DNA from: Lepidodermella squamata
Taxonomy: Eukaryota; Animalia; Gastrotricha
Reading direction: 5' to 3'
Assembly (NCBI GenBank): GCA_047495785.1
Contig: JBLDXI010000028.1
Location: forward strand, 1,302,001 to 1,366,000
DNA length: 64,000 nucleotides
The position numbers were made by a program, and so were the translations under genes. The notes beneath the pieces were generated by a model. The model was not told the DNA's origin, did not search any database, and worked only from the letters and a program-made list of their open reading frames with translations. This document shows positions 4,990-53,749 of the stretch, piece by piece. Positions within the stretch are counted from its first letter, which is position 1; every line of letters starts with the position of its first letter.

Positions 4990-7900
4990 ATGAATTCCAC
5001 CGCCGTTCAACTGAGTGACGTATCATCTACTCTACCTTCAATATTTCCAGACGATGTACTACAAGTGAGCGATTTTCAATGTCAATTTGTCTGAATTTTA
5101 TTGATAATTCTTACCAGGCTATCGATGGTTTTGTTATTATCATCACACCGCAGGGCCACATTGAATTTGTTTCGGATAATGTAACTGAGGTTTTACGTTA
5201 TCCACCGGTTAGTTATAATAGTGTTCATTTTCTATTTTTAATAGCAATTTTGCAAAAGCGCGTGCGTGGATTCTATTTATAACCTGCTCCCCGACGAATT
5301 TTTTCTATCCAGTCACCTGATACTCTATCATAAGGCGCTAGAATTTTCACATTTTCAGTTTGTTGAATTTTAGTGCTAGGAGCGACCTGCTTTTAAAAAT
5401 CAATTTTAAATTTCCTTTCTTGAAAGCGCGTTCATGTTGCATCAGGTATGCCAAAATTTTCAAACTTTAAGCAGTCCTGTTCTAGTTTAAGCTAGATATA
5501 GGGTTTTCTTATTAATTTAATTTTTATTGGGTCACAAGATGCTTAACTAAAGACGCATTCTAGTGCTAGATTTGTCGAATCTACCGTATTTTCCGTATAG
5601 CTTCATTTACCCGTTATTACCAATTACCACCCGTCCCGTTTGCAACCTCCGTGTTTTAGGCCCTTGATAAAATAAAGCCTCATGCCCGCTATAGCTACCC
5701 GCGATCTAAATTTTAAATCAAACTTCGATAATCGCATTTAAAATAATTGCGCACAATTTTTTGAAATTCTTTTCTGAGGCGTTTGATGGGCATGTATGAT
5801 GGAAAATGGCGAAACATAGCTGAGTGAGAGAATTCAAGCAGCAAACATGCCAAAGTAGCTATCGATTTCCTAGCAAACATTTCAAAAAAAACTAAAAACC
5901 TAACATTTTCAGAAATTCGCATCGCCCTCTAACGATAATTTCTCGATTTGATGAACAGCTGTTGCTTTCAGTTCAAAAATTATCAAGTTATTTTAATTTG
6001 TACTCAATTTTAACTTTGAAAACTTGCTTTGAACTATTAGAGTCGCATGCTCGCGTTTGTAACACGTCCCGTTTACAACCCCCTTTTTCGAAGCTTTGAA
6101 ATTACAATGCCCCCTGAAGCTATTACGGAAAATAGGGTATTCAAAGTAAAATTCAGAATTTTCATTTATTTCTTTTTAATTTAGGGAAGATTATTTTCAA
6201 ATGAAAGTTTTTTGTCTTGGCAAATTAGTACTGCGAAAAATTCTGAATTTTAAGAAAAATTAAATTACCAAGTTTCCCCTGATATAGATGTCACTTGATT
6301 TTGAAGTCATACTTTGAAATTGAGACCCCGGACTAGGTGAGCGTCGCAAATTCGCTTAAAATTTTTAGTTCTGAATTCATGTCCTAAATAATTTTGTTTA
6401 ATGACTGGTGGTTTTCTACTGCTAATTCAATTACTGTATGATAATTTTCGGAATTTTAATTGAAAGAGGCGATTATTCACCGCAAAAATTTCACGCAAAA
6501 TGCGTAATTAGTCTTTTCCATCTAATCAGGTGTCAATATGTCATCGCAATTCGGCATACTCCCACCTGCTATGCGTACCAATGTATTACAAAGGTTATGC
6601 GTTATCGCTTTATTGGATTGCGATACGCTCGAATTTGAGAATTCCTACTAGTTCCGCATCGTTGATTTTTTCAAAATGCGCGTCATCTGCTGTCAGGAAA
6701 AAATTCGCGATTGTTGCGCAATTTATTATCACCTATAATTAGTGTGTTTACTCTGTGGCTAAGCTCTTTCATTTTTTGTCTTAATACAGGACGAGATACG
6801 AGGCCGGTCACTATACAGTTTTCTGGCCGTAGATTCACACTTCGAGTTGAGCAATTGTTTGTGCACGCTGAACTCGAACGCCGCCGACTATAACCGACAA
6901 GACCGTCCATATGTATTCAACTGCCGCATGAGCGTGAAGCCGCGTTCTCAGATCGGCATTAATAACAGCATCTCTAAAGGAACAACTCACCCCCTTCACG
7001 AACAGCAGCGATTTGAAAATATTCAAGTTTGTTCAAGCTATAGCTATCATGCATGCTGTTTTTTATGTTGTAGAAATTTTTATGACATTTTTTTCCGTGG
7101 TGTTCTCACAATAACCCCCACCCCACAATTGCTTGCGCTTAACTAACACAATTAAATGTCGTCGTGCATGGCCGAGTATGGGCCAAATGTCAAAAATTTC
7201 ATGAGTTCACTGCAAGATAATGATGATAATACGAATGACTCACAGATATCGGTGCACGTGCAACAGCCTGGTAGTAACTCTTCGCCCGCTTCGGCGACGC
7301 CGAACTCGACCGGCGGCGATACGTTGAGCAAGACGTCGACGAAGAACGCGTCGCTGACGCCCGTTGACTTTGCGTCGATCGGCGACTTGTCGAAATCGTC
7401 CAACGCAACCCCGTCAACGCCTGCCTCGCCTAGCCAGAGCAGCAATCCGAAACTCGTGTGCATTGCGAAGCGGCGCCGCTCGGCGCAGGCCGCCGCCCAC
7501 CTGTTGTCGCACATGGGAATGCAACAGTTTCACATGCGCCTCGACCTGTCCGGCACGATCCTAGACTACGACGGCTCGGGACTGCACTGCGGTGATTACC
7601 AGATACCCGGATGCGTCGGCTCGAATATTCGCGATTTTTGCATCGAGCACGATCGCCACCTCGTAGACGAATTGTTTCGGACAGGTAAAATATGCGCATT
7701 TTTTGATAAAAAATTGAAAATGTCCAATAATTTGTCGATTCGAGAAAAAAATTGGGAAAAAATTGCATAAAAATATGTTAATTTTTCGCATTTTAAAGCC
7801 TGCTTCAACTGGGCTCGTAGCCTCCGAAGAGAACTTAGGGGCCGCAATTTAGGAGATTTTGCGTTTGGAACTCGGAATTTTTTTATTAAAAACCCTTAAT

Positions 7901-28532: not shown

Positions 28533-31367
28533 ATGTCGCTGAACTTAACCAAAAACTTGGTAAAAGTAAACTTACGCCATTAAATTTTATTAAAATAAAT
28601 ATTCACAGGGTTCAGCTGGCATGAGTTCAGCACCTTTGATTTTTCAAAATCAGAGCGATTTTCAGCAATACGTCGATAAATCTTGCTCGGACGCAGTGAA
28701 CAGAATAGTTTCTATTTGGCTCGTACAATTACTAACAAATTTGACAAATTATGACCCTACGGCAAATATCACAGCAGCAAATGCGACCAATTTGAGCACG
28801 AATTCCTCTGGAACGAATGTCACAAATACTACTCAATCGGCGAATGTTGATCAGGTCACAGCAATGCTTGATTCGCTATCATCAATAGGCCCACTACTTC
28901 TTCAAAAGGCAATTCTAAAAATGCTAGCAGAAGATATGGGCGTTCAAACAGCAATAGAAGGAAATTTGATAAATAGCGCGAGTTTCAGCACGGCAGTTTA
29001 TGCGAACATGGTGACGCCCATTAAGGACAACAGCAACGTATTTTACCTTTTGGCCATGGGCATTTTCATTTATTTTATGCAAACCGGTTTCGCCCTCATG
29101 GAAGTTGGCATGGTTCGAACAAAGAACACATCGAACAGCTTGTGGAAAAACGTTTCATACAGCTGTGAGTTGATGAAAATAATCATTCATCTTTCATCTG
29201 AATTTTTTACAGTTGCATCCGCCCTTGGTTATTGGCTCACAGGAATGGCGTTTTCGTTCGGCGATAGTCGCGGTCATTTTGCGGGCTCAACTTTCTGGGC
29301 GTTCAAGGATATGCCAACAACTGGGGCGGGCACAAATTTGATGCTATTCTTCTTTGAATACGTGTTTTGCACGACAGCCGGAGCAGTAATGACAGGTATT
29401 TCTCAGAGAAAAAATTCAAGACGTAGGTATATCAAGACTCCTTCAACTAAGGTGCAATCGCCGAACGAGCTCAGTTGATATGCTACATAATTTACACACT
29501 CATCGCTTCAGCTGTCACCTATCCAGTCGTAGTCCATTGGTGCTGGCATGCGGAAGGCTGGCTGGTCCAAGGATTCAAGTACAACATGACAGGATCGGAT
29601 GATTTAGTGACCATTGGATACGAAGATTTTGCGGGATCCGGTGTTGTCCACGTGTGTGGCGGTGTAGCGGCTCTCGTAGCTATCATCTTCGTCGGCCCAA
29701 GGATTGGTCGATTTGGGCCGAACGGTGAAGTCAATGAAATCAGCGGACATTCTGTCACGGTATGAAATAAACCACTCCACATCTGAACTACTGCTATCTC
29801 TTAGCTAATACTCAGCTTGTTGGTGCTGGAGCTATGACCCTCTTCACAGGTTTTCTTGCCTTCAACGCCGGGTCGAAGCTGTCGATTAGCAATGATGGCG
29901 ACACGATCGCGATCAATCGAGCAGCTGTAAACACGATAATATGCGGAACCGGTGGCTTTCTCGTTGTTGGCATTTTGCACCGAATACTCAGCAAAAGATG
30001 GCTAGTTATTCCTATGCTGTGTGGCGGGTTGGCTGGCAACGTTGCGGCCTGCTGCAATTGTCACACCGTTGAAGCTTGGGCTGCATTCTCTATTGGGTAA
30101 TTTTGGGATTTTTGGAATCTGCATAAAAGTTATAAGCTGATTGAAGACTTAAAGAGCTCTGCCCTTCATTTAGAGCTTCGAAAATGTAAAATCAAGAAAA
30201 AGAGACTTACAGTTATGGCCATTTTCAACTATGCATTAAGGCGTCTTATCTATCGACTTTATATTTAACAGAATTTTGGCGGGCCTCATGTTCATGTTTG
30301 CTTCATGGGCACTGCGAAAACTAAGAATCGACGACGCTGCAGACGCTGTTGGAGGTTAAAACGGGCTGAAAGTACTTTTAATTCTTTAATTCTTCTTGAG
30401 TTTTTGCAGTTCATTGGGGAGGCGGTTTTGTCGGAGTATTGGGACTCGCTTTCTTTAAAATCGATGTCGGTGTTCTGTATGCCTGGGACTACCGATCTGG
30501 ACTGGTGAGCCGGCTAAAATACGACCACATTTGGTGTTAATTATTAATTTATGTTCATCAGATTCTTGGCTGGCAACTCCTAGGCTTCACCGTGATATCG
30601 CTATGGAGCGCATCTCACACAGTAAGTGGGTCAAATTTCTTGCTGTCGTGTGTAATTATCTCCTATTATCCTAGTACGTGATCTTCTATATCCTGAAAAT
30701 GTTCAATATGGTACGAGTTGATCCAGAGACGGAGCTACTAGGGCTAGACTACGCCCACGGCCACGAATTGCCTTACCCATCGGAAGCTTACAAGAAGCCA
30801 AATGTGCATGAACCGGAACCTGCTTGCGGTGAGATGGGTGCCTACAATTTGACAGAGGAAGAAAAACTTGAGCTCGCCTATGATCAGCTATTTGAGGAAG
30901 AAATGTCAAAGTATACCGTTGAATATATCAACAAACCAGGCTGGTCACACCCAGTTTTTGGCGGCGTTCTCTACGACTTGAGTTGGATTTCAGTTGTGCG
31001 GTCGCGGAGGAAGGAAATGGAAAAGCGGATGAAAGCTGCACTTATCAAAGCCAACGGCAGCGCTTCTCACACGAATGGTCACGCACTTCCGGTTATGACG
31101 CAACGCAGCGATCTTCACATGGTGGAAAACGGCAATGTTAAGCCTAACTCTGTGCCTATGGCTACATTAGCCCCTGCTGTGAATTCGACCCGATCGGAGC
31201 AAGCCGTCAACACTTCTGAACCCCCAACCCTAATCGATGCGAGTACAAATGTGGCTATGCGGTTCCGCGGTGATTTCAAGTCCTTCCAAGCCAATATGCA
31301 GCCGTCCTATGAAAATGGTGAAGCCGGCCATGGCCTTTCGCATGTCAACCCGAGTTTTGAATACTAA
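28533..31367 (+). CDS. amt: Ammonium transporter paralogue 1 (about 9 exons; long glycosylated N-terminus, long C-tail)
   Basis: FMQTGFALMEVGMVR, GAIAER, HWCW...GWL, DFAGSGVVH, GPRIGRF, FLAFNAGS, DDAADAVGVH, ELLGLD. A probable first exon 28533-28559 splices in frame. Confidence 0.93.
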
Positions 31368-32428: not shown

Positions 32429-34588
32429 ATGGAAATCGATTATAACCAAACCGATTTTCGCCTAAGTATTGATTCCGCATGTTACTTGAAGGCTCAAAGA
32501 ATCATCGCAACTATCATTGATAAAGTTCGTTTTTCACTCAAACAGTTTCGTAAAACCTAAATTGTGATGTTTTTAGCTAAATTTGACAGATCGCGAAGTT
32601 CAGGAACCATCACACCTAGCGGCAAGCCTTAAATCGACATGCTATTCGGCTCTTAACAACATCAACGCTGAAGCAGGAAAAGATATAGCAATTTACGGAG
32701 CTGGGTCAAACGCTTTTTTCCTCCTGTTCATGGCCATGAATATTTTCAGTATGGATTTCGGTTTTGCTATGCTCGAATGTGGCCTTATCCGGGAGAAAAG
32801 CTCCGGCAACAGTATGCTGAAAAATTGTCTATATACATGTAGGTTACATCGCGTTTTTAATATTGCAATCTTTACATTCCCTGATCAAGTTACATCCTCG
32901 ATACCTTATTGGCTTTTGGGTTATTCATTGACCTATGGCAAGTCGATTGGAGGATTAATCGGTGATTTGACTTATGTAGCGATGATCGATGAGTCTAACG
33001 GTGTTTTCTGGTTTTTCGAGGTTAAGTCAGCATTCTTTATTGTTAAGATCTTAGTCGAACTTGGATGTTTAGCTTTCATTTTGTCTAACCACATCGGCTA
33101 TCGTTTCCGGTGCAATGGCGGAAAAAGGCCAACTTTCAGCCTACATGATGTTCAACGTAGTTACTTCGGCCATCATCTTTCCAATTATAGCTCATTGGGC
33201 TTGGAATGACGAAGGTTTTACATTGCTGGAATCTAGTCAGCAATATCGTATATTTTGTTAATTTAATAGGATGGCTCAAACTGGGATCAGTATACCAATT
33301 GGACACTTCAAGCGGAACTGACGAAGTGCGCATCGGATATTTCGTAAGATTCCAGTTTGCAAACCATCTTAGGTAACAATTTGATTATAGGATTTTGCGG
33401 GAAGTGGTGTTTGCCACGTAACTGGTGGAATAGCAGGGCTAGGTAACATTTATATGCTTCATCATTACATTTAAACTTAACGAATTGACGCTCCTCGATT
33501 CAGTGTTTATAGCTTTTAATGGGCCTCGAATTGAGCGAATAGGTCCGGATGGAAAATTTCGTTTCTCTGAAATCCCTGGACACAATTTAGCGGTAATTGA
33601 CCTTTCCTTTATCAATATTCTAAAAACAGCTCCTATTTTATTAGTATTTTGTTTACGGAGCAACTTGTTTGTTCTCGAATTTCATCGCCTTCAACGCCGG
33701 TTCACAGCTTTCAATGAACTTGGCAAAGGATCAAATGCCAATCATTAGGGCTACGTCAACCACGGTAACTGCAGGATTTAGCGGCGGCATCACAACAGCG
33801 ATTTACCTAAGACTTTTCCATCGACAATGGTCCCTTGTGGCGCCCTTATGCGCAGCTCTTGCTGGCACGGTCGCCATATGCTGCAGCTGCAGTGTCGTTC
33901 AAAATTGGGGAGCAGTTTGCATTGGGTAAGAAAAGCTGCCGGATCTCTGAGACTGACTAATGTGAATATCTTAGAGTCATTGGGGCAATTGTTAGTCAAT
34001 TGGTTTCTTACCTCATGAAAGTCGCAAAGCTCGATGATCCTGTCGACGCGGTTTCCGTTCATTTCGGTGGCGGATTGGCTGGCCTACTAAGCTACCCGTT
34101 CTTCAAAATCGATGAAGGGATCCTCTACAACTGGGACCGACGGGGTCTCTTGGTGAGTGATGTCCTCTTGGCGGTATTTTCCTTTAGATTTCCTCTTCAG
34201 ATGCTTGGTTGGCAATTCGTTGGCCTTCTTTCTATTATGGCTTACACTGCAGCTGTGACGATCATCTTATGCCTGATCCTCAGGGCTTTCAACATGTTGT
34301 CTGTTGACAGAGAGGCGGAAGAGCTCGGTTTGTGAAACATGATTCCTGACTTCATAACTTCAACGTATTTCCTTTACAGGTTTGACGATAGCGCATGGGC
34401 ACGAGGGCTCAGAGGAAATAGCGTCTGAGCTAATAAAAACCATTAATCTTTTCGGCGAAACTGATAAGGAAATCAGTAGCAAAAAGCCACCCTCATGTGT
34501 GCTACTTGATCTCAGTCGTTTCTCAATTGTCACAGATCTAAGGCTGCGCAAGAGGAAACAGACGCCTTCGGAATCAAGTCAATTGTGA
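32429..34588 (+). CDS. amt: Ammonium transporter paralogue 2 (about 11 exons)
   Basis: [49 protein letters not shown]. All exon phases join into an open frame. Confidence 0.92.
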
Positions 34589-34750
34589 GAAGTTTTCACA
34601 AAATTGAAAAATGTATTGCCAATTAAAATAAGTGAGTGGATCAACATCTACGCAGCTGTATTTTTTAATCTGATACAGCCTCGAGCTATGCTAGCTAATT
34701 ATGATGTAGAAAATGCCTGAGCAGTAAGAGTGTCAATGCATGGATGAAAA

Positions 34751-36745
34751 ATGCTTTCCGACTCTGAAAAATTCCTCATCGAAGCAGGATGCAATGCCAA
34801 AGCGAAAAAGGTGTTGGCAGATCTTTTTCTGAAAGTGATTTTTGTCCATTCCATCTTGAATAAATGTTACTTAGTAGCCAATTTTTTCCAGTTGAACTTG
34901 ACAGAGGAGTCTGTTACGGAGTTAGTTACCGCAGAATTACGGAGAGCTGTTGAGCAAACGAAAGCCAACGATGAAAAGCTGCTTACGACTACGCAGAATG
35001 TGTTTTTCCTCCTCCTGACAGGAATCTTCATTTTTAGCATGGATTCAGGATTCGCGCTACTCGAATGCGGTCTCGTCCGTCAGAAAAATTGTGCCAACAG
35101 CATAGCGAAGAATTGCATCTACTCGTGTTGGTACACTTGACCTAGGTTCGGTAATCACAGCTAATTTGTGCCTCCATAGTTTCAACAGCCATTCCTTACT
35201 GGTTGGTTGGGCATTCTATAACATACGGCAAATCTATCAATGGGATTTTCGGGGATCTGAGTGATCAAATTGGCGGTTCTAATGGTGTTTTCTGGTTCTT
35301 TGAGGTTGTTACTGAACTCCTTGAGGCTTTTACTTAAACTGCTGTCTACCTTAGTATTCTTTTTGTCTGACAACCTCTGCGATTGTTTCTGGGGCCATTG
35401 CCGAAAAGGGTCAGTTGGTTGGCTACCTGTGTTACACCTGGGTAACTTCTGCATTGATCTTCCCAGTCGTTGCTCATTGGACATGGAACGAAGAGGGATG
35501 GCTGCGAATGGGGGCTATTTATCACCTCGCTGATGGGCCACAACGGATAGGGTTTATAGTGAGCATTTTCTCCCTGGAGGAAGCTCTTGTATCTGATTCT
35601 TTAAAAAGGATTTCGCTGGCTCAGGGGTATGCCACGTTGTTGGTGCAGCTTCTTCATTAGGTAGGTTACGATCCATTAGTTGTACGGTTTGCCAAGTTTT
35701 TTTTTTTACTTTTTTTTACTAGTCTTTGTGATTTTCAATGGTCCGAGGATTGATCGAATAGGACTAAGAGGAGAATTTCAAGATATCAATGGCCACAATC
35801 TCCAGGTAAATTTGCTTTCATTTTCGCTTTAAAGTATGATCTGGTGTTCAGTTTTTAACCATTGGATGCATGCTGCTTTTCTCGAGCTTCATCGCCTTCA
35901 ACGCCGGATCAGAAATGTCCATAGCCAGAGCTAAGAATCAGATGTCTGTAATCCGAGCTGCCTCGACAACCGTCGCCGCTACTTTAGGAGGCGGTCTAAT
36001 CGCCATGGCCTACCACCGAATCTTCAAAAAACGATGGTCTCTGATCCCGGTCCTATGCTGCTCGTTAGCCGGAACTGTAGCCATCTGCTGCAGTTGCAAT
36101 GTCGTGCAAAACTGGGCTGCGTTTATCATAGGGTTCGAAAGATCTTAAAACCACCCAAAAAACAATTGTCAATTTCGAATTTTTCAGGGTCATTGCTGGG
36201 CTGGCTTGCATGTCAACATCTCAAGCCATGAAAAGGATTCGATTGGATGATCCAGTCGATGCTGTCTCCGTCCACTTTGGCGGCGGAGTGATCGGCCTGG
36301 TGTGCTATGCCTTTTTCAAAATCGACGAAGGGATTCTCTACCATTGGGACCGAAAATCATTTCTTGTTCGATATTTGTTCTCCCTTCAAAGTACGGGATT
36401 AATAGTTCATTTTTAGATGCTAGGCTGGCAAATGGCTGGACTTGTATCAATCGTTTTTTACACTGGATTCGTGACGTTTCTGCTATGCCTAATCCTGAAA
36501 TATTTCAACCTTCTAACGGTCGACGAAAATTCTGAAAAAATCGGTATTAATTGAGGCAATTTTCTATTTAATAGCCCTAATAATGTCATTTTTCAGGGCT
36601 AAGCGCATCCTATGGACATGAGACGGAGAACAATTTTGAAATGCTCTCAACGCCACATATCAATTATCACGAGTTGCCTGTCGCCGCAAGAATCCGTCTA
36701 AGAAAAAACGCCGTCAGACCTAATAATGCTGCTTCAACGTCTTGA
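34751..36745 (+). CDS. amt: Ammonium transporter paralogue 3 (about 10 exons)
   Basis: [49 protein letters not shown]. Confidence 0.92.
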
Positions 36746-36939
36746 GGCGAATAAAAACTGACATTTTTGCAGAGCGTGTCACGCATTTTCAAGCCTTACG
36801 GGATCAATTTTAGTCAATAAATTCGAAAAAATTTACCTATATGCCTGAGGGCCTACTCAGCGTGGTTTCCGCTTTTCAAAAGTAAGACGCGCATCACTTG
36901 ACAATAATCATCGCGCTCCCTCACTTTATACATCATAAA

Positions 36940-39760
36940 ATGATTGTCAATAACACTTCCTACATTGACTCGCAATGTGCAATAAAAGCCCGCAAAATTT
37001 TGGCTCAGCTTATCGCTCAGGTTCGGCCTGTTTCAACTTTGAAAATTTCGGATTTTTCTAAAGCAAATTTTTTTTCCAGCTCAATTTGACTTCTATCGAC
37101 TTGGACGCAACTCAAGACCCGGCGGAAATAGCGAGAATAATCAGGGAAAGATGTCTTTCAGCCGTAGCGAAGGCAACGTCTGAGCAAGCTGAGGATTTGG
37201 AGAAATTCGGACGTCGCTACAACGCGTTTTTCTTATTCATTCTTGCGCTGTTCATCTTCAGCATGGATTTCGGTTTCGCCCTACTCGAATGCGGGCTAGT
37301 TAGGAAGAAAAATTCCGCCAATAGCATGCTGAAAAATCTCTTCTATTCATGTGAATTTCCATAATTTTATTTTGTCTTTACTTTAAACATTGTGATTTTC
37401 TTTTTGCAATTTATCATCAGATTCAAAAAACAACTGAAAAATTCACTGTAATAGGGTACGGCGACAAAACAGCAACTGCGTAGAACAGCAAATGCGACAA
37501 AACAGCAACATTTTTTCATTTCGCGACAAAACAGCGAGAACCAGTTACGTAAAAGAAGCATCGTGTTTCTGCTGTTATGTCGCAATGCGAAAAAGTTGCT
37601 GTTTTGTAGCGTTTGCTGTTTTGGGTATTTGCTGTTATGACGGTGTTATTGACTGTAAATGCCCTATTACAAGTCTGCCTCGTATTTGAGCCTTGATTTT
37701 TAAAAAAAAATTATATATTTTTGCGCAGTCGACAGGAAGAATCAAATTTCGAAATTCCCCGGAAATTTTCGGAAACTTCATGATTAATTTAAAAAATTCA
37801 AATTATTTACCATTGAATTTTGGGTAATTTCAGTAGAAGACCTATTTATTAAAATTATTTCTTATCGATTTATCGAATTTCCGTAAATTGATTTTAAATT
37901 TCCAACAGTTACGTCTTCAATTCCTTACTGGCTATTTGGTCACTCTTTGACCTATGGAAAATCGATCGGTGGACTGTTCGGCGATATGACCTACGCTGCT
38001 GAGACATCAGAGTTTGAAAATGGCGTATTCTGGTTTTTCGAGGTATTTTCATTCGAAAATTAAATTGGAAAATTACCTTACCTAGACTTTCCCATAGTAT
38101 TCCTTCTGCTTAACGACTTCAGCCATTGTTTCCGGTGCTATAGCAGAGAAGGGGCAGCTGATTGCTTTCATTTCTCACACAATCCTTACTTCGAGCTTGA
38201 TTTTTCCTGTCGTGGCTCATTGGGCCTGGAACGATGAAGGTGACTTCCTAATTAAACTCGACAATTTTCATTACGTTTTTTTTCTTTTTAGGTTGGTTGA
38301 GGAAGGGACAAATGCTGGAAATTGAGACTGATGAGGGAAAGCAAACAGTTCACTTTGGATACTTTGTGAGTTTCCTAATTTTTTTAATTCTCATTATTCC
38401 AAATTTCCAAACAGGATTTTGCGGGTTCGGGTGTTTGCCACGTTGTTGGAGCAGTTGCCGCTTTAGGTATACCTTATTTTATTTATTTATTTTTATTTAA
38501 TTTTCGGATATAGTTTTCATCTTTTTCAACGGCCCTCGAGCGGATAGAATCGGACCAGATGGAAAATTACTGCCTGACATTCCCGGCCACGACATTACAG
38601 TTTGTTAAAAATGCAAAATCAAGCAAAAATTTGAAAATTCTGCTAATTTTCAACAGCTGTTTGCCAACGGTTGTCAAAGCCTGTTTTCGAACTTTGTCGC
38701 TTTCAATACTGGATCGCAGTTATCGATGCGTCGTGTCAAAGACCAAATGCCTATTGTTCGGGCGACAGCTACGACAGTTTCTGCCGGTCTTGCCGCTGGA
38801 ATTTTCGCAGCATTTTACTACCGATTAGTCCACAAAAAATGGTCGCTAATTCAGCCTATGTGTTGCGCTTTGGCTGGAACTGTGGCGATTTGTTGTAGCT
38901 GTAGCGTGGTTCAAAATTGGGCAGCTCTTTGCATTGGGTTCGTAAATTCTATCAATTGATATTACTCAAAAAGCATCAGAATTTTTCGAAACGCGAAAGA
39001 GATTTATTCCGAAGCCCCTTAAATCATTTTGAAATTTTTTCCTGGTGTAATTTTTTTACTGAACCTTTATTGAACCTCTGACCTATTTTTTCTAATTATT
39101 GCAGTATTTTAGCCGGGATCACGAGTCTTGTAGTATCTAATCTGATGAAATTTTTGAGGTTGGATGATCCAGTTGACGCCGTGGCAGGTTTGAAATATCA
39201 AATATTTTTAAACTTTTTTCAATTTTATTGTTACAACAGTACATCTCGGTGGGGGTGCGATCGGCCTTATTAGCTACGCATTTTTCAGAATCGATCAAGG
39301 AATAGTTTACAACTGGGACAAGCGCGGAGCTTTCGTAATAAACTTTTCTCATTTTTTCTCAAATTTTTAAATACATTTTTTAGATGTTGGCTTGGCAGCT
39401 AGCAGGTCTTGTCGCTATAACGCTCTACACAGGCCTCCTCACAACGATTTTGTGCCTCACTTTGAGAAAATTCAACCTTCTAACAGTCGACAGAATCAGC
39501 GAGGCAATAGGTGGGTGTTTGCTACCCTATAGCAATCTTCGTAAATACCTATACCTTTAATTTAAGGTTTAACGATCGCCCACGGCCATGAGGACGGTGA
39601 CGTGTTAGACGATGCAGCAGTTTGCGAGGCAATCGATCAAAAACTAGCGCAAATTCAAACAAGTTTTTCAAACAATAACTCAGTTGAAAAGTCTGCCCTA
39701 GATTTCAGTTCTGTATCTGTTGTTTCCAAAATTCGGCGAAGGATTGTCATGAAAGCATAA
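36940..39760 (+). CDS. amt: Ammonium transporter paralogue 4 (about 12 exons)
   Basis: [49 protein letters not shown]. Confidence 0.92.
37447..37671. mobile_element. Fold-back MITE in Amt4 intron 2
   Basis: Terminal TGTAATAGGG / CCCTATTACA; internal AAAACAGCAAC repeats mirrored by GTTGCTGTTTT. Confidence 0.65.
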
Positions 39761-39911
39761 ATAATAAAATAATGTAGCTAAAAATGCGATGGGCCTTTCG
39801 TGTTTGAAGGGGCGTATTTGAGTGAGATTGCTAATTAAAAAAAAGGTAAGTCTGTCATCTTGCCGATCAGCATTTCTTATTACTATCTTTATAAAAAAAA
39901 CTGCTAATAGA

Positions 39912-41998
39912 ATGACTCAAATTTCCATCAATGCTACACAGCTTGAGCAAGTTCGCAAAGTTATCGAGGCAACGGCAAATAAAATGGCTGAAAATATATT
40001 AACAAAGGTGGGTCAACAAATTGCTGGCTATTTTTATTGAAATTATTTTCTGCAGCTGAAGAATCGAGTTTCGGCAGAACTATTGAATTCAACGGCTGGA
40101 ATTTTCCCGAATCCTGATGTCGAACGAAATATGAACGCGTTCTTCCTGCTCATAACTGCCTTCAGCATTTTTAGTATAAAAATCGCAATTATTTAGCAAT
40201 TTTCAATTGAAATATTCCTAAATCTAGGCATGAATTTCGGATTCGGTCTACTCGAAGCTGGGCTGGTTCGGAAGAAAAATTCGGCGAATAGTATTTTGAA
40301 AAATGCTTCTTATTCCTGTTAGTTGATTCGCAATTTCTCGCCAATTTTTCAATTTTTTTCTTACAATTTTCAGTGATTGCCATAATTTCGTGGTGGCTAA
40401 TTGGATTTTCGATTGCCTTTGGAAAATCTCAATACGGTGTGGTCGGATCGCTAGAATACGCTGCCAGACCAGGTCCGCGTGGAGCTTTTTGGTTCTTTGA
40501 GGTAAGCTAAAAAAAATCCGTTCATATTGGATTATTTTATAAAATCATTTCAAGTACTGTTTTGCCGTAACACCGTGCGCTATTGTCAGCGGTGCGATCG
40601 CGGAAAAAGCTCATTTAATGGCGTTTGTCACATTCACGCTGATGTCGACCAGCGTGATGTACCCTGTCATAGCTCATTGGAGCTGGAACGCAGGTGGGTG
40701 GCTAAAAAATGGCCTAATTTACCAAGCGAACGGAGCGAATTCAACTTTCCAAGTCGGTTACCAGGTTGGAATACAAATATTTTTCATAAAAAAATTAGAA
40801 TCTCAATTAGGATTTTGCTGGTTCCGGTGTTTGTCATATTGTGGGAGGCGTTGCGGCTCTCATTTTCGCAATATTTTTGGGACCTAGGATCGGCCGAGTT
40901 CAAAAAGATGGGACTTTTCGATCGATGCCTGGACATTCTCTACCCGTATTTTATGTTCAATTTCAATGATATTAATCATCGCAATTAATATTCATAGTAT
41001 TTCTGCTTTGGTTGCATAAATCTCTTCGTCATGTTCATCGCTTTTAATTGTGGTTCGGAGCTTTCGATCACGAGGCGAGAAGATAACCTACCCGTTTCGC
41101 GCGCCGCAATTAGCACAGTTTTCGCGTCGATGGGCGGCTTCATTACCGGGGCTATCGTCAACCGATTCAAGTTGAAAAGATGGTCAGTGGCTCCCACCCT
41201 TTGCAGCGGCCTCACGGGGACAGTCGCAATATGCAGCTGCTGCAACTCTGTCGAACCGTGGGCAGCGTTCATAATAGGGTAAAAATTCGAAAAATTTAAT
41301 TAAAAATTTAGATTCAAATATTTCGAAAACAGGGCTGTCTCAGCGCCTGTTTACCTCACGTTATCAAACTGCCTAGAGCGGCTAAAAATCGACGACGTAG
41401 TCGATGCGGTGCCTGGTAACAAAATTAAAAAAAAGTATTTAAAATACCATTTTAATTTGAAAATGTTGTGTCTGCTTTATACTCAAGTTCATTTGGGTGG
41501 TGGAATCACGGGTCCGATTTTGTTGGCTTTTCTTCAAAAAGATCGCGGAATTATCTACCAAGCGACAAAGAAATCTGGCCTGGTAATTAAAATTCCAAAA
41601 AATTTGAACTCGATTGATATTTTCGCTTTCAGATTCTGGCATGGCAGCTCGCCGGGATAATAACCATAATTATTTACTGCTCTATTTTAACGAGTCTTCT
41701 TTGCCTTGCTCTTCGCAAGTTCAAGTTACTGCGAGTTTCGCCCAAGGAAGAAATTGAAGGTAAATGAATTTTTTTCTTCATTTTTTTATTAATATTTTTT
41801 ATAGGTCTCGATTTAACTTTCGGTCATTGTATCGATAGCGGCAATTCATCTCCTGTCGTTTTAAAGCAGAAACCGGGCTTGTCACAATTTTCCCTGGCTA
41901 CATTGCCCAGTAATTTACGCCTGACCTCGAACAGCTCGAGCGCAGCGCTTATCACCATGCGCAATCGGCGACTAATCTCCCCGGCTAAACCATCGTAA
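39912..41998 (+). CDS. amt: Ammonium transporter paralogue 5 (about 11 exons)
   Basis: [61 protein letters not shown]. Confidence 0.92.
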
Positions 41999-45190: not shown

Positions 45191-48100
45191 ATGATGATAT
45201 CAAATAAAGTCGAGCCCGAGTTTTCAAATACTATGCTAAGAATCGGCGGTTTTCACCGCGATACCGTGTTTGACCGGATAATACAGGGTCATAATTCGGT
45301 GAATTTAACATCACACGTGTTCGGGTCGATCAGCATACGAGACCTGAAGCCGGCTTTTATGGAGTTGGTTCACGATCCTGAGGTTCAACGGACTTTAATT
45401 CGGCATGTTAAATTCGAGGGTGTACAACTAGCGGCGCATAGCTCGGCATTTTTTCTCGTAGCAATGGCCATTCAAGTTCACGGTATACCAATAATTAAGA
45501 CAATTTGACGATTTTTATGTTTTGAATGTTAACAGTCATGCAGGCCGGTTTTGCGCTGATTGAAGCCGGTTGCGTTCGATCGAAAAGCGTGACGAATACA
45601 TTTTGGAAAAATTGCGTTTGCGCCTGTAAAATTTTGATTTTTTTTTCTAATTTTCCTTAATTTTTTCTCTTCCTCTCCCAGATATTGCGACAATAGGATT
45701 TTGGTTAACTGGCTACGCAATCGCTTTCGGACCTTCACTCGAAGGATTAGGAATTATTGGTACCGATTTTTGGGCCTTCACTAACCTCAACACATCTGAA
45801 TACAGCCAATGGTTTTATCATGTAAATAGGGAAAATATTCAATAATTTACCTAATTTTTTAACATTTTTTGTTAATTTAGTGCGCATTTTGCGCTACCGC
45901 GTGTACTATCGTTTCAGGTGAGCAACATTTTGATGACCACAGAAAATTTACATTTTTACTAAATTAATTTGTTGAATTTTCTCGATTTTCTTGATTTTTA
46001 TTTGATAGGTGCCATAGCCGAACGAGTTCATGTATTGTTTTTCGTTGTCCTCACCCTCGTAAATTCATCCTTCACGTATCCTCTCGTCGTTCACTGGGTA
46101 TGGTCAGAATGCGGATGGCTAAAACGAGGCGTTCCTTTCATTAACGGCAACCGGGCAACGATTCTATGCACTGAATCAATTCGAGAGGCGAAATACACGG
46201 TCGGATTCGAAGACTTCGCCGGAAGTGGGCCAGTTCATGTTGTAGGCGGAGCTTCAGCTATGGCTGCTATTATCATGCTTGGCTCGAGACGGGGTCGATG
46301 GCAGAGCTCGAGACGCGAATCGATTGGATTAGTCACTTTTCACGAAAATCATATACAAGGCCACTCAATCACGGTAAAATCACGCGATTTATGTGATAAT
46401 TTACCCGAATTTTCATGATTTCTAGCTGACGGCACTTGGCTTTATGATTCTGTCAGCTGGTTTTGTGGCTTTTAATGTCAGCTCCAACATGCAACTTGGT
46501 AATCAGCTCAATGACGATGCAACTATTGGCAAAATAGCTACTAATACAGGTATCAATCAATCAATCAATTTATTTGCAAACTTCGTTCACAGGACTAGAA
46601 GGGCACGCAGGCCTCTTACACTAACCCGATGCAATAAGATTTCCTTTACAATATTTCTTCAGATTCACGCGGTACAGATTTCGTTTTACGATATTGTTCT
46701 TTATATCAGCAGGTAAATTATCGTCAAAGTTAAATACGGTAGTCGGCAATCGATTCCAATTGTTTACTGTACGGTTCAAAAAATAGTTCTTATAAATAGG
46801 TTTGGTGGGATTTTTGCACTTCATATTCGGATTTAGAACAGAGAAACGAAAACGATGACCTCGATTGTTATTCAACAAAAATTTTATATTATTAGAGATA
46901 GATGTTTTAACAGACCCATTTATTATTTTGAAAAGGAAGCAAAGATCGTATATAAGGCGCCGTTCTTCGAGAGACACTAGCCGAAATTTTTTTAGACGCT
47001 CGGAATAGGACGGGCGCGAAGGATCGTAGGGTGATAAATTAAGAGCACGGCGAGTAAAGTAAGATTGCAATTTTTCTAATTTGTCAATTTCATTTTTAAA
47101 CCAAGGTGACCAGATGCAAGTACAATTCTCTAGCAACGGGCGAACATATGTACAGTAGGCACGTACTAACGTCTCAGGAGACTGACCTTTCAGAGCACGT
47201 AGTATCAGGTTTGCACGTAGGTAGGCTTTAGAAACAATCGAATTAATATGGGCTTTGAATTCTAGCTTTTCATCAATAAGAAGACCCAAGTCTTTATAGT
47301 TGAGACATCTTTGAAGCAAGTTTCCCCCTAGGTAGTAGGAAGATTTTGGATTTTTGAAGCCAAGATGAAGAACCGCACATTTGTCAATAGAGAGCTTTAG
47401 TTGCCAAGTTTCAAGCCAGACAAAGATGTTTTCAAGAGATAGAGATAGACGTTCAGAGAGAGATGAATCATTTTTACAAAAGACTATGTATAATTTGCAG
47501 TCGTCAGCGAACAGTTTAATGGAGACACCTTCAGGTAGGATATCGGTAAGGTCATTAATGTAGAGCAGAAATAACAGAGGGCCCAGAACGGAACCCTGAG
47601 GTACGCCACTGGTTACGCAAATTTCATCGCTTAGGGTTCCGTTGACATTGACACGTTGGGTACGATTAGTAAGATAGCCAGTTTAGAAGATTACCATCAA
47701 CTCCAATAGCTTTAAGTTTTATTAAGAGTTTCCGATGGCAAACAATGTCGAAGGCCTTAGCAAGATCTAGGTAGACTATATCCGCAAATTTCATGCATTC
47801 AAAGGCAAAGGTCCAGTCAAGCACGCATTCAAGCATTTGAGTAGCGGGTGATTTAAGTCGCATGAATCCATGTTGATCCGCAGAAATAATGCTGTGATAT
47901 AAGAGGAAGTCGAGGATTTTATTTCGAATTATTGTTTCGAGAATTCGAGGTAGACAGGGTTGCCCTCAGATTTTTTTCATAATTTTGACCTTAAGTGAAT
48001 CCAATTGGTTGTAGCATATTCTAGTCTAAAATCGGTATGCAAATCGCTTTTAAAACACGAGTAAAATTTGCGTAAAAGGTCCAATTAGCATATGCAAATG

Positions 48101-49579
48101 ATGTGTCCAAATTCAGAGGTTACTTCACGTATTTCTTAAAAATCAAAGTGAACTACGAAATTTCTCAAAATTTACCTGTCGATTCAGAATCTTCACCCCA
48201 AGGTTTCACAATTTTTCCAAAATTTTCAGACGAAAACATAATTTAAAAAAATTTAAAAACGTGCTTGGTCAAAGTTACAGTATTTAAATTTAATTTTTTG
48301 AATATTTTCTGAAAATATAAGATTAATTTATCGCATTTTTTAGTGCTTGGAGCCTCAGGTGGTATGCTGATATCTACAGCTGTAACGCTGATAGTTACCC
48401 GAAAGTGGCTAATTTTGCCGGCATTATTCGGCGGACTAGCCGGCGATGTGGCCATGGGAGCCGGTTGCAACGTCTACGACGCCTGGGGCGCCTTCTTGGT
48501 CGGCATTTTAGGCGGCATTGTCTACATGACAATTTCCAGGTTCATGGTCAAAATTCGACTTGACGATGTTGTAGACGCAGTTGCAGGTAAAAATTAAAAT
48601 GAATAGAAAATTACCGAAATTTCGGGTTCAATTTTATAGTTCATTTGGGCGGCGGCGTGACCGGCCTGATTGCTCTAGCATTTTTCCATCCTGATACTGG
48701 AATTTTATACAAATGGAATTCCCGATCAATATTGGTGCGTTTTAAACTAATTTTACCAGTATTTTCTTATGATTGTTTTGAGTAGCTTTTGTGCTGGCAA
48801 TGTGTTGGAACATTTTCAATAGCAGCCTGGGCCTCGATGAATACAATGGTCGTATTTTTCTGTCTGACTTGCTTCAAAAAACTACGATTCAGGTCTCGGA
48901 TCGAAAACCGAGGCATGGACTACGCTCATGACCACGAAATTTGCTACCCACCGAAATCGAACCCTTGGCAAGCTTCTGATATTGTCGAGATGAGCGGCAG
49001 TGAAAAGCGAAGAAATGCAATCGTTTCACAATTCGGCGAAAGTGACAAAAATGACGAAATTATTAACGACGAGATGACTTGTGAAATCGTCGATTTAAGT
49101 AAGGTTCTAATCAATTTAAAAAAAAATTTAGAAGAGAAATTCAGATTTTATTGAAATTTTACTATTTTTCAGGCGAAAAAATTCCTGAAAATGTTGCGAC
49201 CGAGCTGTCTCACCATCTATACGAAAATACACCTCTAGTAAGAAAGGAGCCGCCTAAAATTCTGGACCTAGCCTCACGACCTATTCCGACCCCGCCCGAA
49301 AATTCCAAAATTGATCAAGCGGAACAGTTCGTGAAGCCAACCAGGCGTGACGCAGCCGCGATGACTGATAATTGGGACGAAACTCTAAAAATCACCGTTT
49401 CACCGGGGCTGACCCCTGTTACCTCGAAAGACCTGCCTAACTGTGACAAAATGTCTCGACACGCTTCGATGAAATCGCGTCCGGAGACGCCAACAGCTAC
49501 GGTTCGCCGTCTAGCCGACGGAACGTTCGACATCGAAGCGCAATATGTCAATGTTGCAATTCAAGTCACAGAATTATGA
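45191..49579 (+). CDS. amt: Ammonium transporter paralogue 6 (about 10 exons; LINE in one intron; long C-tail)
   Basis: VMQAGFALIEAG, GAIAER, DFAGSGPVH, FVAFNVSS, DDVVDAVAVHLGGG, ENRGMD. Confidence 0.9.
46553..47947 (-). mobile_element. 5'-truncated CR1/L2-group LINE with one frameshift
   Basis: QHGFM, YLDLAKAFD, SGVPQGSVLGPLLFLLYINDL, LFADD, KDLG, YVRPLLE. Frameshift near 47680. The 3' end is AAATAAA plus an (ATTG)n tail. AGGTA occurs on both flanks. Confidence 0.92.
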
Positions 49580-51070: not shown

Positions 51071-53749
51071 ATGGTACAACGATTCATCAGTCAGCATTCA
51101 TCCCGGGAAAATGGCACAAATTACACGGAAAAATTGATGCCGCCTGATTTACAGCTCGACGTCCGGAACCGATTGCTGGAGCTCATCGTCAACGACACGG
51201 CAGTTCAGGATGCAGTTGCGGACTTGGTTTGGAAATCGCCGATTTTCAAGGCCTTTCGGGACAATTCTAACGCATATTTCCTCATCGCTATGGCTATTCA
51301 AATTCACGGTAATTGCCGTTTTCGTTCGCCTAAATTTTTCGAAAATAATTTTGCAAAAATAGGGTATTAGTATGTTCATTTGACCTTTAAACTCGGATTT
51401 TCAGTTCATCAGTTATTTTAATGAATTTTTGGAATTTGAACAAAATCGAGCTAAGGATATATCATGAGACGACGAAATGTACTCGTTAAAATGTTCTTTG
51501 TTATTTCCGAATTATAGTTATGCAGTATGGTTTCGCTCTACTTGAAGCAGGCTGTGTTCGAGGCAAAAATGCAACCAGCAGTATGTGGCGAAACTGCGTT
51601 TGCGGTTTCGTGGCCGCTTTCGGCTTTTGGCTGTTCGGATTCCCACTAGCCTTCGGAAAATCAGTTGGAGGATTTTTGGGCACAACTTACTGGGCCTTCC
51701 ACAACATGCCCGACTCGACGGAACGGTACAACGCAAACTTTTGGTTCTTCCAGGTAATTTGTTGGGGAAATCTTGGGTTGGGGTTAGGGTTAGGGTTAGG
51801 CGTGGACTAGGGTTAGGATTGGGTTAGGTTAGGGTTTAAGGCTGGGTCTTAAAATTGGAGATTTGAAACTGATTGAAATAATATTGTACGGAATTCAACG
51901 ACGTTTGGTACTGAATTCAATAATTTGGGAATGATTTCATATCCCAATTTTCTAATTTACTTATTTGTAATTCATTCGATTTTTTCCGCCGAATTTATAG
52001 TACGCTTTTGCGACCACGGCTTCGACAATAATCAGCGGGGCGATTGCTGAACGAGGTCATGCTGTGTTTTTCCTCTTCTCTTCGTTCGTTATGTCATCTC
52101 TTACGTACCCGATTGTGGTCCATTGGTCGTGGCACGATGCTGGTTGGCTGAAATTGGGCACAAGGGGAGAAGAAATCGGTTTCATCGACTTTGCTGGAAG
52201 TGGCGTTGTCCATATGACTGGAGGAGCAGCTTCACTGGCCGCTATTATCCTACTCGGGGCTCGAAGTGGCCGATTTACTTCCAACCACATTGGCCAGCTC
52301 GAATCGTTTGTCGCTCATTCACCGACGGTGAAGAATTAGAAAAAGAATCGAGAAAAAAATTGAATTTTTTATGTTTATTCAGCTAGCGGCGCTAGGGTGT
52401 TTAATCCTATCAACAGGCTTTGTGGCCTTCAACGCTGGTTCGCAGCTTCACGTTGATGCGATCGGAGATTCTCATGCCATTGGTTATGCCGCTACTAATA
52501 CCATGTTTGTTACATTGCAATTTTTTCGATTCATGTTTCAAATTTTTTCCAAAAACAGGCTGGCTGGAGCTGGTGGAATGCTGTCTGTAGCTATTTTCGC
52601 ATTCTGGTAATTTTTTCGCCGCGCCACGCAAATTAATTTATTAAACTTATCTCACGAAAGGCGAACGCGGAAATTCCCATTACTACCACCATTGTGCGGC
52701 AGTTTAGCCGGAAATGTATGGTTTTTCTCAACTTTATTTGAGGTAAAAAATTGAAGAAATAATACATTTAGGTGGCGATATGTGCTGGGTGTGATGTTTT
52801 GACAACTTGGGCCTCAGTAGCCATCGGATGCGTTGCTGGCCTAGTCTACATTTTCGTGTCTTGGCTCGTTGCCAAGATGAAACTGGACGATCCTGTTGAT
52901 GCTGTTGGAGGTATGATAGGAAAATCACACAAATCTTGAGGAAAAATCCAAAAAATTTCCTTATAGTTCATCTCGGGGGAGGACTAACCGGTCTGATTGC
53001 TACGGCTTTGCTGCACCCTGGAATCGGAATATTTTATCATTGGAACATTCGATCTGCACTCGTAAGTTTATTTACTTTGAACTGTCAAAATGAGGCGAAT
53101 CAGGCATGGCAAATCACGAAAGTGGCTCAGTAAAGACCCTTTGAGTGGGGTACTGTTGGAAAGCCCGAGAAAAGGCAAACCTGGTTGTCTATAATAGACA
53201 TCGATCTGCTGCTAAAACGATGCATCTGGGCCTAAATTGAAGCAAGAATCATGAGGAAATAAAATATTTTCAAAAAGCTCGGGCTATCCGCTTTTCGCAC
53301 AGGCTATCCAACGACACCCAACTCAATCCACCCTTTTAGCATTTTGAATCTCATCTATCAAAATAATATGAACTTCACCTGAAAATGCGAATTTTGTGGA
53401 TTATCTGCGTTTTTTTTAGTTTTTGGGCTGGCAAATAGTCGGAGCTGTGGTCATTTTCGCTTGGTCATTTGTGCACACCCTGGTCATATGCGCCATTCTA
53501 CGGTACTTCAAGCTACTCCGAATGACGTCGCCCATTCCAAAAACTCTTCCATCCTTCGACGGAGCGCATAACGACGCCGAAGAAATCGGAATGGACGAAG
53601 CTCACGGCCACGAGCCGGCCTATCCCGAACTCGAATTAACCGTCGCTAGACTCAGCACGTTCTCCGCAAAACGAAATTCATGCCGATGCGAAAGTGACTC
53701 GACAAAAGACGACAGTTGCCCAACAACATGCGCAAGTGGACACATTTGA
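51071..53749 (+). CDS. amt: Ammonium transporter paralogue 7 (about 9 exons)
   Basis: VMQYGFALLEAG, WFFQYAF, GAIAER, DFAGSGVVH, FVAFNAGS, DDPVDAVGVHLGGG, EEIGMD. Confidence 0.92.
51773..51840 (+). repeat. Degenerate (TTAGGG)n-like tract in an Amt7 intron
   Basis: GGGTTAGGGTTAGGGTTAGG...GGTTAGGTTAGGG. Confidence 0.8.

Follow-up and report, generated by a model that had tools for sequence, protein, structure and literature searches.

Replaced C-terminal and polar-pocket residues around an unchanged pore in four tandem Amt genes of the gastrotrich Lepidodermella squamata

We analysed a 64,000-nt stretch (the window) of the 121-Mb genome assembly of the gastrotrich Lepidodermella squamata (GCA_047495785.1, contig JBLDXI010000028.1, here C28, positions 1302001-1366000). 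Its plus strand carries seven tandem genes of the Amt ammonium transporter type, Amt1 to Amt7, each with an ATG, a stop codon and zero internal stops (Table 1). The gene models were built with a custom protein-to-genome spliced aligner using external Amt proteins as guides, and ambiguous junctions were checked by hand. All introns of Amt1-7 are GT-AG, and most of them are 45-60 nt long. Positions 32429-41998, to which an initial annotation from the letters of the sequence had drawn attention, begin exactly at the Amt2 ATG and end with the stop codon of Amt5. A six-frame search of the genome matched PF00909 (Ammonium_transp) exon by exon in Amt2, Amt3, Amt4 and Amt5; the Amt2 pieces span profile positions 2-389 of 399, and individual Amt2 exons scored 56.5 and 28.9 bits (cut-off 23.2). 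Database searches used single exons or stop-free stretches, and the spliced proteins were used in alignments, trees and codon counts. Amt2-5 share 37-44% identity with molluscan Amts, and both the profile matches and the pore residues place them in the Amt/Mep/Rh superfamily.

The spliced models confirmed every motif state that the initial annotation had listed. In the first transmembrane helix (TM1), the motif reads MQTGF, MDFGF, MDSGF, MDFGF, MNFGF, MQAGF and MQYGF in Amt1-7, respectively. The ER motif of the second intracellular loop (ICL2) is AEK in Amt2-5 and AER in Amt1, Amt6 and Amt7, and the context of the first pore histidine (His1) is GVVH in Amt1 and Amt7, GVCH in all of Amt2-5 and GPVH in Amt6. 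At the C-terminus, the ExxGxD motif is ELLGLD in Amt1, EELGLT in Amt2, EKIGLS in Amt3, EAIGLT in Amt4, EIEGLD in Amt5, ENRGMD in Amt6 and EEIGMD in Amt7, so that the Asp is lost in Amt2-4, in which the last intron falls within the motif. The conserved Tyr-Pro that lies nine residues 3' of the Asp position is absent from Amt2-5. The TM3 motif is FFE in Amt1-5, FYH in Amt6 and FFQ in Amt7. The Val-to-Cys, Arg-to-Lys and Gln-to-Asp replacements need two base changes each, and the codons for Lys, Cys and Thr at the derived sites vary among the copies.

Table 1 Genes of the Amt array and codons of the replaced residues (positions within the window)
Feature	Position	Strand	Description
Amt1	28621-31367	+	748 aa; comparator: MQ, AER, VVH, complete C-terminal motif set
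Amt2	32429-34588	+	546 aa; 11 exons: 32429-32524, 32577-32838, 32890-33020, 33073-33214, 33270-33343, 33391-33442, 33504-33592, 33645-33925, 33975-34152, 34201-34327, 34380-34588
Amt3	34751-36745	+	505 aa; 10 exons: 34751-34834, 34892-35126, 35180-35304, 35355-35558, 35609-35660, 35723-35805, 35852-36132, 36188-36365, 36417-36543, 36597-36745
Amt4	36940-39760	+	539 aa; 12 exons: 36940-37020, 37080-37350, 37909-38042, 38098-38239, 38292-38365, 38415-38466, 38514-38599, 38657-38937, 39105-39187, 39240-39334, 39384-39510, 39567-39760
Amt5	39912-41998	+	518 aa; 11 exons: 39912-40007, 40056-40173, 40228-40317, 40374-40501, 40555-40764, 40811-40945, 40998-41278, 41333-41415, 41488-41582, 41633-41759, 41805-41998
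Amt6	45191-49579	+	about 701 aa, last junction uncertain; comparator: MQ, AER, PVH, FYH, complete C-terminal motif set
Amt7	51071-53749	+	529 aa; comparator: MQ, AER, VVH, FFQ, complete C-terminal motif set
TM1 codon at AtAMT1;1 Q57 / Sd-Amt1 Q22	32754-32756 (Amt2), 35042-35044 (Amt3), 37266-37268 (Amt4), 40233-40235 (Amt5)	+	Asp GAT in Amt2-4, Asn AAT in Amt5
ICL2 ER-motif Arg to Lys	33124-33126 AAA (Amt2), 35406-35408 AAG (Amt3), 38149-38151 AAG (Amt4), 40606-40608 AAA (Amt5)	+	
Cys before first pore His (E. coli V167)	33412-33414 TGC (Amt2), 35630-35632 (Amt3), 38436-38438 (Amt4), 40832-40834 (Amt5)	+	
ICL3 GPRxGRF Gly (E. coli G187) to acidic	33533-33535 Glu (Amt2), 35752-35754 Asp (Amt3), 38543-38545 Asp (Amt4)	+	Gly kept in Amt5
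TM7 Asn (E. coli N233, Sd-Amt1 N239)	33759-33761 Thr (Amt2), 35966-35968 Thr (Amt3), 38771-38773 Thr (Amt4), 41112-41114 Ser (Amt5)	+	
C-terminal Arg (E. coli R384, Af-Amt1 R370)	34300-34302 Ser (Amt2), 36516-36518 Thr (Amt3), 39483-39485 Thr (Amt4)	+	Arg kept in Amt5
ExxGxD Asp (E. coli D395, Af-Amt1 D381, AtAMT1;1 D458)	34385-34387 Thr (Amt2), 36602-36604 Ser (Amt3), 39572-39574 Thr (Amt4)	+	Asp kept in Amt5 (41810-41812)

We then compared these states with two sets of homologues, one of 122 full-length, mostly animal Amts retrieved with Limulus Amt (set 1) and one of 79 more of animal, algal, plant and bacterial origin (set 2). In set 1, the TM1 Gln was found in 120 of 121 sequences, the ER Arg in 122 of 122 and the C-terminal Asp in 121 of 122, and the residue before His1 was Val in 116, Leu in 4 and Ile in 2. 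Set 2 gave a similar picture: Gln in 68 sequences, Glu in 4, His in 3 and Ala and Thr in one each at the TM1 position, Val (75) or Ile (4) before His1, and Asp in 76 of 77; the ER Arg was again invariant (79/79), making 201 of 201 for both sets together. Asp or Asn at the TM1 Gln position, Lys in the ER motif and Cys before His1 were seen in none of these approximately 200 homologues, so the residues of Amt2-5 are not common in canonical Amts; had they been, this would by the initial annotation's own account have refuted it. The His of FYH in Amt6 is an ordinary variant (27/122 in set 1); the Glu of FFE is rare (1/122 in set 1), yet it is common to Amt1-5 and several other paralogues. When the open reading frame (ORF) covering TM1-TM3 of Amt2 was used in an exhaustive profile-free search of a representative library of 1.8 billion proteins, 59 weak matches were obtained, the best at 43 bits and 41% identity and none with MD; this library therefore holds no close relative of the Amt2-5 subclade. 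A word-index protein search with the 285-aa (amino acid) first ORF of Amt1 gave no match and was uninformative, as this ORF runs through an intron and the full protein was outside the length range.

To place the replacements on the protein, we screened the 112 alignment columns whose invariance in set 1 reaches at least 95%, and defined as Amt2-4-specific those residues that are changed in all three proteins and unchanged in Amt1, Amt6, Amt7 and a paralogue on contig C17. Twelve replacements qualified (AmtB numbering): the Gln aligned with I25, R122, Y140, V167, G187, G211, N233, W365, R384, D395, Y404 and P405. Six of the twelve fall within the 24 columns of the ICLs and the C-terminus, an enrichment (one-sided Fisher test, p = 0.02) that is indicative only because the categories were set post hoc. 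In the C-terminal region, an Arg, a Glu, a Gly, an Asp and a Tyr are universally conserved (R384, E390, G393, D395 and Y404 of AmtB) and dock onto ICL1 and ICL3 in open bacterial structures, in which the ExxGxD Asp caps the TM2 helix dipole.PMC4852598 Amt1, Amt6 and Amt7 have all five of these residues and Amt5 lacks only the Tyr. Amt2-4 retain only the Glu and the Gly: the Arg is Ser, Thr and Thr and the Asp is Thr, Ser and Thr in Amt2, Amt3 and Amt4, respectively, and the Tyr is absent. The docking partners are changed as well, from ER to EK in Amt2-5 and from Gly to Glu or Asp in ICL3 of Amt2-4, where the affected residue (G187) sits between the two arginines of the GPRxGRF loop; the RxK motif of ICL1 and the His of ICL3 are retained.

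The sites concerned have published roles. The initial annotation had stated that ExxGxD takes part in C-terminal activation, and this holds, since the motif is part of a conserved C-terminal region that is required for activity.PMC4852598 In the cryo-electron microscopy structure of AtAMT1;1 of Arabidopsis, R149 (the Arg of the ER motif) and the arginines of ICL3 hold the C-terminal regulatory domain, and Ala mutants of these residues lose function.PMC13745463 Its further statement that the Gln of the TM1 motif corresponds to a residue with an effect on transport, Q57 of AtAMT1;1, is likewise supported by the literature: Q57 is the Gln of MQLGF,PMC3355798 its substitution impairs growth,PMC13745463 and Q57H and F60S rescue C-terminal mutants, with Q57H raising Km 65-fold and Vmax 10-fold.PMC3355798

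Eight more Amt-type genes (loci L032 and L035-L040) were found on other contigs, one each on C43, C26, C19 and C17 and two each on C1 (C1a and C1b) and C11 (C11a and C11b). In a maximum-likelihood tree of 53 proteins and 465 columns, all 15 paralogues fell in one clade (100/100 support; stem length 1.34) and therefore represent a lineage-specific expansion. Within it, Amt5+(Amt3+(Amt2+Amt4)) was resolved with 100/100 support, Amt6, Amt7 and C43 formed a second clade, and the pair of Amt1 and C17 grouped with the other paralogues that lack the Gln (83/90). The TM1 motif begins with MQ in C43 and C17, MD in C1a and C11a, MN in C11b, MS in C26, MI in C19 and IV in C1b. The Gln is accordingly lost in 10 of the 15 paralogues, namely Amt2-5 and six genes elsewhere (D, D, N, S, I and V), and the distribution of Gln and non-Gln states takes two changes on the tree. 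C1b, besides having I-V for M-Q, also has Ile for F161 and Leu for F215.

These results change two statements of the initial annotation. It had listed the TM1 replacement among the marks of Amt2-5, and the six paralogues elsewhere that lack the Gln show that it is not confined to them; the paralogues outside the window have AER (AEH in C43), no Cys before His1 and mostly a canonical C-terminus. What truly distinguishes Amt2-5 is AEK, VCH and the C-terminal losses. It had also described the substitutions as coordinated, whereas shared ancestry accounts for them: because Amt2-5 are monophyletic, each site changed in one event on one of two successive stem branches and was inherited, with no need for four independent origins. 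The TM1, EK, VCH, TM7 and Tyr changes came first, on the clade stem; the C-terminal Arg and Asp, together with the ICL3 Gly, were replaced later, on the stem of Amt2-4. Gene conversion as the source of the shared residues was ruled out, as the copies are only 46-57% identical to one another and their synonymous divergence (dS) is saturated. It is the persistence of the derived residues over such divergence, and not their origin, that calls for an explanation.

A metagenome contig from a related organism (L042; ENA ERZ23486764 scaffold_3633) was found to hold only Amt6/7-like genes and no orthologue of Amt2-5. Its three tandem genes (2356-3776, 4270-5746 and 6355-7771; 54% identity to C43) have MQ and AER, and the Gly of ExxGxD is Thr (TID for GxD), which shows that lability of the C-terminal motif in this lineage is not limited to Amt2-4. 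Four further PF00909 loci in the gastrotrich genome (C13:1263598-1264700, C13:1272740-1273720, C42:5051020-5051570 and C42:5055179-5055907) did not align to the Amt references and are probably the Rh-type genes of the genome.

We next considered the pore, with structure numbering mapped via the canonical homologue P0104. F103, F107, W148, D160, H168, F215, S219 and H318 are retained in all seven window genes, which thus keep the recruitment residues Trp148 and Ser219, the Phe gate (F107 and F215), Asp160 and the twin-His pair (E. coli H168 and H318). A PDB search with the 93-aa exon of Amt3 gave no match. The polar surroundings of the pore differ. Below the twin-His lies the N1/N2 cation pocket (in Sd-Amt1 numbering Q22, E29, N45, D48, T104, S107 and Y119), and the pocket at the Q57 position is linked to the twin-His via a water chain.PMC11152129 The N1/N2 ligands and an Asn of the exit funnel (N269) are each kept in 120-122 of the 122 animal Amts. 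Amt2-5 have Asp or Asn at position 22, Tyr at 48 and Ala at 104 and keep E29, N45 and S107; they thereby lack the N1/N2 signature of Cluster 2 Amts as described by Pflueger et al. 2024,PMC11152129 the cluster that holds the other animal Amts. The loss extends beyond the clade: none of the 15 paralogues retains D48, which is replaced by Tyr, Cys or Phe, or N269, which is replaced mostly by Cys, and T104 is Ala in Amt1-5 and most of the non-window paralogues. At the TM3 suppressor site aligned with I136 of AtAMT1;1, Amt2-5 have Leu or Val versus Ala in other animals. By alignment, the MD/MN state is one step of a family-wide rebuild of the N1/N2 pocket, and Amt2-5 fall outside two sub-family definitions, that of the five C-terminal residues with their ER partner and that of the N1/N2 signature. 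The conjecture that the TM1 Asp compensates for the lost TM2 pocket Asp had no independent replicate among approximately 190 homologues and is kept only as such: of the few in which the Gln is replaced by Glu, Thr, Ala or His, most retain the TM2 Asp, and there are homologues without the TM2 Asp that still have the Gln.

The initial annotation had proposed that the subclade may have altered substrate or proton coupling, or that its members act as regulatory or sensor subunits. An altered function is likely, as the replaced residues are functional, the states are rare and the genes are intact and maintained; the part concerning substrate was not supported, as W148, F107, F215, D160, S219 and the twin-His are unchanged. 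A more specific version is that a carboxylate or amide in mid-TM1, together with a thiol beside His1, would affect the way in which protons are handled (NH3/H+ versus NH4+), the dependence on pH or the range of substrates. The Cys stands beside His1 in all four copies, the TM1 residue would sit in the pocket that the water chain joins to the twin-His,PMC11152129 Q57H of AtAMT1;1 alters methylammonium discrimination in addition to Km and Vmax,PMC3355798 and FFQ has become FFE in TM3. However, FFE is also found in Amt1 and several paralogues and is not specific to the clade, no change is seen at the recruitment site, the Phe gate, Asp160 or the twin-His, and six of the twelve clade-specific changes face the cytoplasm, outside the pore. 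We therefore consider changed pore chemistry an unlikely explanation.

The genes are selectively maintained. Pairwise ratios of non-synonymous (dN) to synonymous divergence are undefined because dS between the copies is saturated, and allelic differences were used instead. DNA run X2 holds a second haplotype over parts of Amt2; the 18 exonic differences listed comprise 15 synonymous changes and 3 conservative non-synonymous ones (I/V, S/P and F/L), with 23% synonymous changes expected at random (p about 3e-7). The Cys codon of VCH in Amt2 is itself TGC, with the synonymous allele TGT. Contigs of run X1 skip the Amt3 introns 35806-35851, 36133-36187 and 36366-36416 at GT..AG, and the high-coverage DNA run X2 has no such joints at these three introns; spliced Amt3 RNA therefore exists, provided that X1 is an RNA run, which is our guess. 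The transcript evidence for Amt2, Amt4 and Amt5 is scattered coverage only.

Such data bear on the view that Amt2-5 are redundant duplicates drifting towards loss of function, with odd residues that are neutral or mildly harmful. Redundancy is available in a family of 15 genes, the clade stem and the Amt5 tip are long branches, and departures from the animal consensus among the 112 near-invariant columns number 30-34 in Amt2-5 versus 21-24 in Amt1, Amt6 and Amt7. Against this, the four genes of 10-12 exons contain zero stops, frameshifts or broken splice sites, dS is saturated while dN is 0.36-0.65 across copies (0.36-0.42 within Amt2-4), the derived residues are identical across proteins that have otherwise diverged so far, the Amt2 alleles differ mainly at synonymous sites, and Amt3 is spliced in the RNA-like run. 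Relaxed constraint is accordingly very improbable, and the codon-level evidence places Amt2-5 under purifying selection as selectively maintained genes.

Changes at residues with published roles, absent from approximately 200 homologues and carried by intact, maintained genes, make a changed working mode likely. Since the pore residues are unchanged and half of the clade-specific changes lie in the latch, altered gating or regulation is indicated rather than altered substrate. The explanation that we tentatively favour, and which we hold to be nearly but not quite probable, is that Amt2-5 form an old, monophyletic and maintained branch of the 15-gene Amt family whose members conduct ammonium, with opening uncoupled from the canonical C-terminal latch or re-wired with respect to it. 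The conduction path is whole, with the periplasmic Trp/Ser site, the Phe gate, Asp160 and the twin-His, and two accessory modules are rebuilt. One is the lateral polar pocket below the twin-His, with the TM2 Asp lost, the TM3 Thr replaced by Ala and the TM1 Gln by Asp (Asn in Amt5). The other is the cytoplasmic latch, which forms when the C-terminal region binds to ICL1-3 and keeps the channel open; in Amt2-4, the contacts of the Arg, Asp and Tyr would be lost. In canonical Amts, an undocked C-terminus would leave the channel closed or inactive unless a change in the pore or pocket such as Q57H or F60S releases it, and the regulation and kinetics of Amt2-5 would be expected to differ from those of Amt1, Amt6 and Amt7.

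The closest parallel is provided by the suppressor mutants of AtAMT1;1 (Q57H and F60S, and I136F, A137D and A138P in TM3), which include the very Gln position of MQxGF that is changed in Amt2-5. With Q57H, transport proceeds even when the C-terminus is inactivated or truncated, and AtAMT1;1 becomes a low-affinity, high-capacity conductor freed from C-terminal control; Amt2-4 pair a changed Gln with a dismantled C-terminal motif. The residues of Amt2-5 are natural Asp or Asn and not the laboratory His, so an equal effect is inferred, and the same TM1 change occurs here also in paralogues with an intact C-terminus. A bolder, and doubtful, extension is that Amt2-4 are natural latch-free transporters: a suppressor-like change of the TM1 Gln on the clade stem would have made the latch dispensable, replacement of its Arg, Asp and Tyr and of the loop residues that they contact would have followed, and the Thr or Ser at the Asp position might restore the negative charge only when phosphorylated, so that a constitutive contact would become a kinase-controlled switch.

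Several observations weigh against uncoupled or re-wired opening. Characterised Amts are inactivated by mutation of ExxGxD or truncation of the C-terminus,PMC4852598,PMC13745463 so that a permanently closed state is just as conceivable for Amt2-4; at the TM1 position there is Asp or Asn, whereas the suppressor tested was His; C1a and C11a also have the Gln-to-Asp change, and as their ER motif and C-terminus are intact, one module can change without the other; and Amt5 retains the C-terminal Arg and Asp. In addition, the latch-enrichment test was defined after the data had been seen, and the contacts between the changed residues were taken from homologous structures in papers.

If the channels were indeed shut, Amt2-5, or at least Amt2-4, would be non-transporting ammonium sensors, or regulatory subunits in heterotrimers with the neighbouring canonical Amts, their undocked C-terminus marking a closed, Mep2-like state. 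The solved structures nearest to a canonical animal Amt are two receptors, Ks-Amt5 (6eu6; E 4e-62) and Sd-Amt1 (8qj3/8qj4; E 7e-61), compared with 1e-41 for Af-Amt1. By sequence, both receptors cluster with the animal Amts, and they likewise lack the ExxGxD Asp (ExxGxN), with GLN where Amt2-4 have GLT, GLS and GLT; this is a shared trait and not a published defining feature of receptors. Tandem genes would make co-expression and mixed trimers plausible, and closed Mep2 structures are marked by lost contacts between the C-terminus and the loops.PMC4852598 In closed, non-phosphorylated fungal Mep2 the C-terminal region is undocked from ICL1 and ICL3 and subject to C-terminal regulation, in which it would resemble Amt2-5; unlike Amt2-4, in which the loss is in the sequence, Mep2 retains the five C-terminal residues and the ER motif, and its undocking is conformational and reversible by phosphorylation. 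The receptors, for their part, keep the Gln of MQ, AER, VVH, the C-terminal Arg, all pocket ligands and fused transducer domains, which Amt2-5 do not have as a set: the receptor-pocket ligands are eroded (D48 to Tyr, T104 to Ala and Q22 to Asp or Asn), and a Pfam search of the Amt1-6 C-terminal tails (E up to 0.1) found no family, hence no transducer module. With the complete set of pore residues also kept under purifying selection, a sensor or subunit role appears rather improbable, and by these sequence comparisons Amt2-5 are not modular Amt-like receptors.

Conducting proteins with altered opening thus remain our preferred reading of Amt2-5. Compared with canonical animal Amts (annotated as putative ammonium transporter 1 in molluscs, arthropods and echinoderms) and E. 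coli AmtB, they share PF00909, the twin-His, the Phe gate, Trp148 and Asp160; R122, V167, R384, D395 and Y404 of AmtB correspond in Amt2-4 to Lys, Cys, Ser/Thr, Thr/Ser and no Tyr, within the twelve replacements at positions that are at least 95% invariant. The C-terminal gating of Amt/Mep/AMT1 proteins and the role of the Q57 pocket are still debated on the basis of laboratory mutants and a small number of structures. Amt2-5 offer four long-maintained natural proteins that have kept their pore intact and that carry replacements of the Q57 equivalent, of the ER Arg or its C-terminal counterparts, the latter at as many as three of the five universal positions, and the canonical sister genes in the same array are built-in controls. 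If they transport, the latch would be dispensable and the pore or pocket changes responsible would be indicated; if they do not, they would represent a new kind of non-conducting animal Amt subunit. A second, independent lead is the 15-gene family itself, which lacks a pocket Asp and an exit-funnel Asn that are kept in 120 of 122 other animal sequences.

Further features were observed in and around the array. The 1.8-kb intron of Amt6 contains two minus-strand ORFs (46621-47319 and 47666-47863), antisense to Amt6, whose motifs resemble, as we presume, the reverse-transcriptase and thumb parts of a retroelement without long terminal repeats (a remnant); a Pfam search with the 232-aa ORF gave no match. 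Within the first long intron of Amt4 (558 nt), positions 37429-37628 have a depth of approximately 19,000 in DNA run X2 versus approximately 110 nearby, with many joints and loose ends, and are a very high-copy short repeat. On another contig, locus L041 (C33:686000-693000, minus strand, about 2609-3870) holds an incomplete second version of the 3' half of Amt7 that differs at few amino acids, either a recent segmental duplicate or an uncollapsed haplotype.

The C-terminal tails of Amt1-5, otherwise unrelated, have in common a short motif close to the end, in which an Arg/Lys-rich run comes after hydrophobic-Ser-hydrophobic-Val (31000-31060 in Amt1, 34490-34560 in Amt2, 36690-36730 in Amt3, 39700-39750 in Amt4 and 41930-41980 in Amt5), which has no Pfam match. 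At the other end, Amt2-5 have in common a short first exon followed by the same phase-0 intron. In Amt2-4 this exon holds a conserved Cys and the second exon starts with LNLT, a likely N-glycosylation sequon in the extracellular N-terminus; Amt5 has other N-x-S/T sequons there. An intron directly 5' of the M(Q/D/N)xGF codons is common to Amt5 (40174-40227), Amt6 (45483-45535), Amt7 (51309-51517) and most paralogues elsewhere, and it is absent from Amt1-4 and C17; it was therefore lost at least twice.

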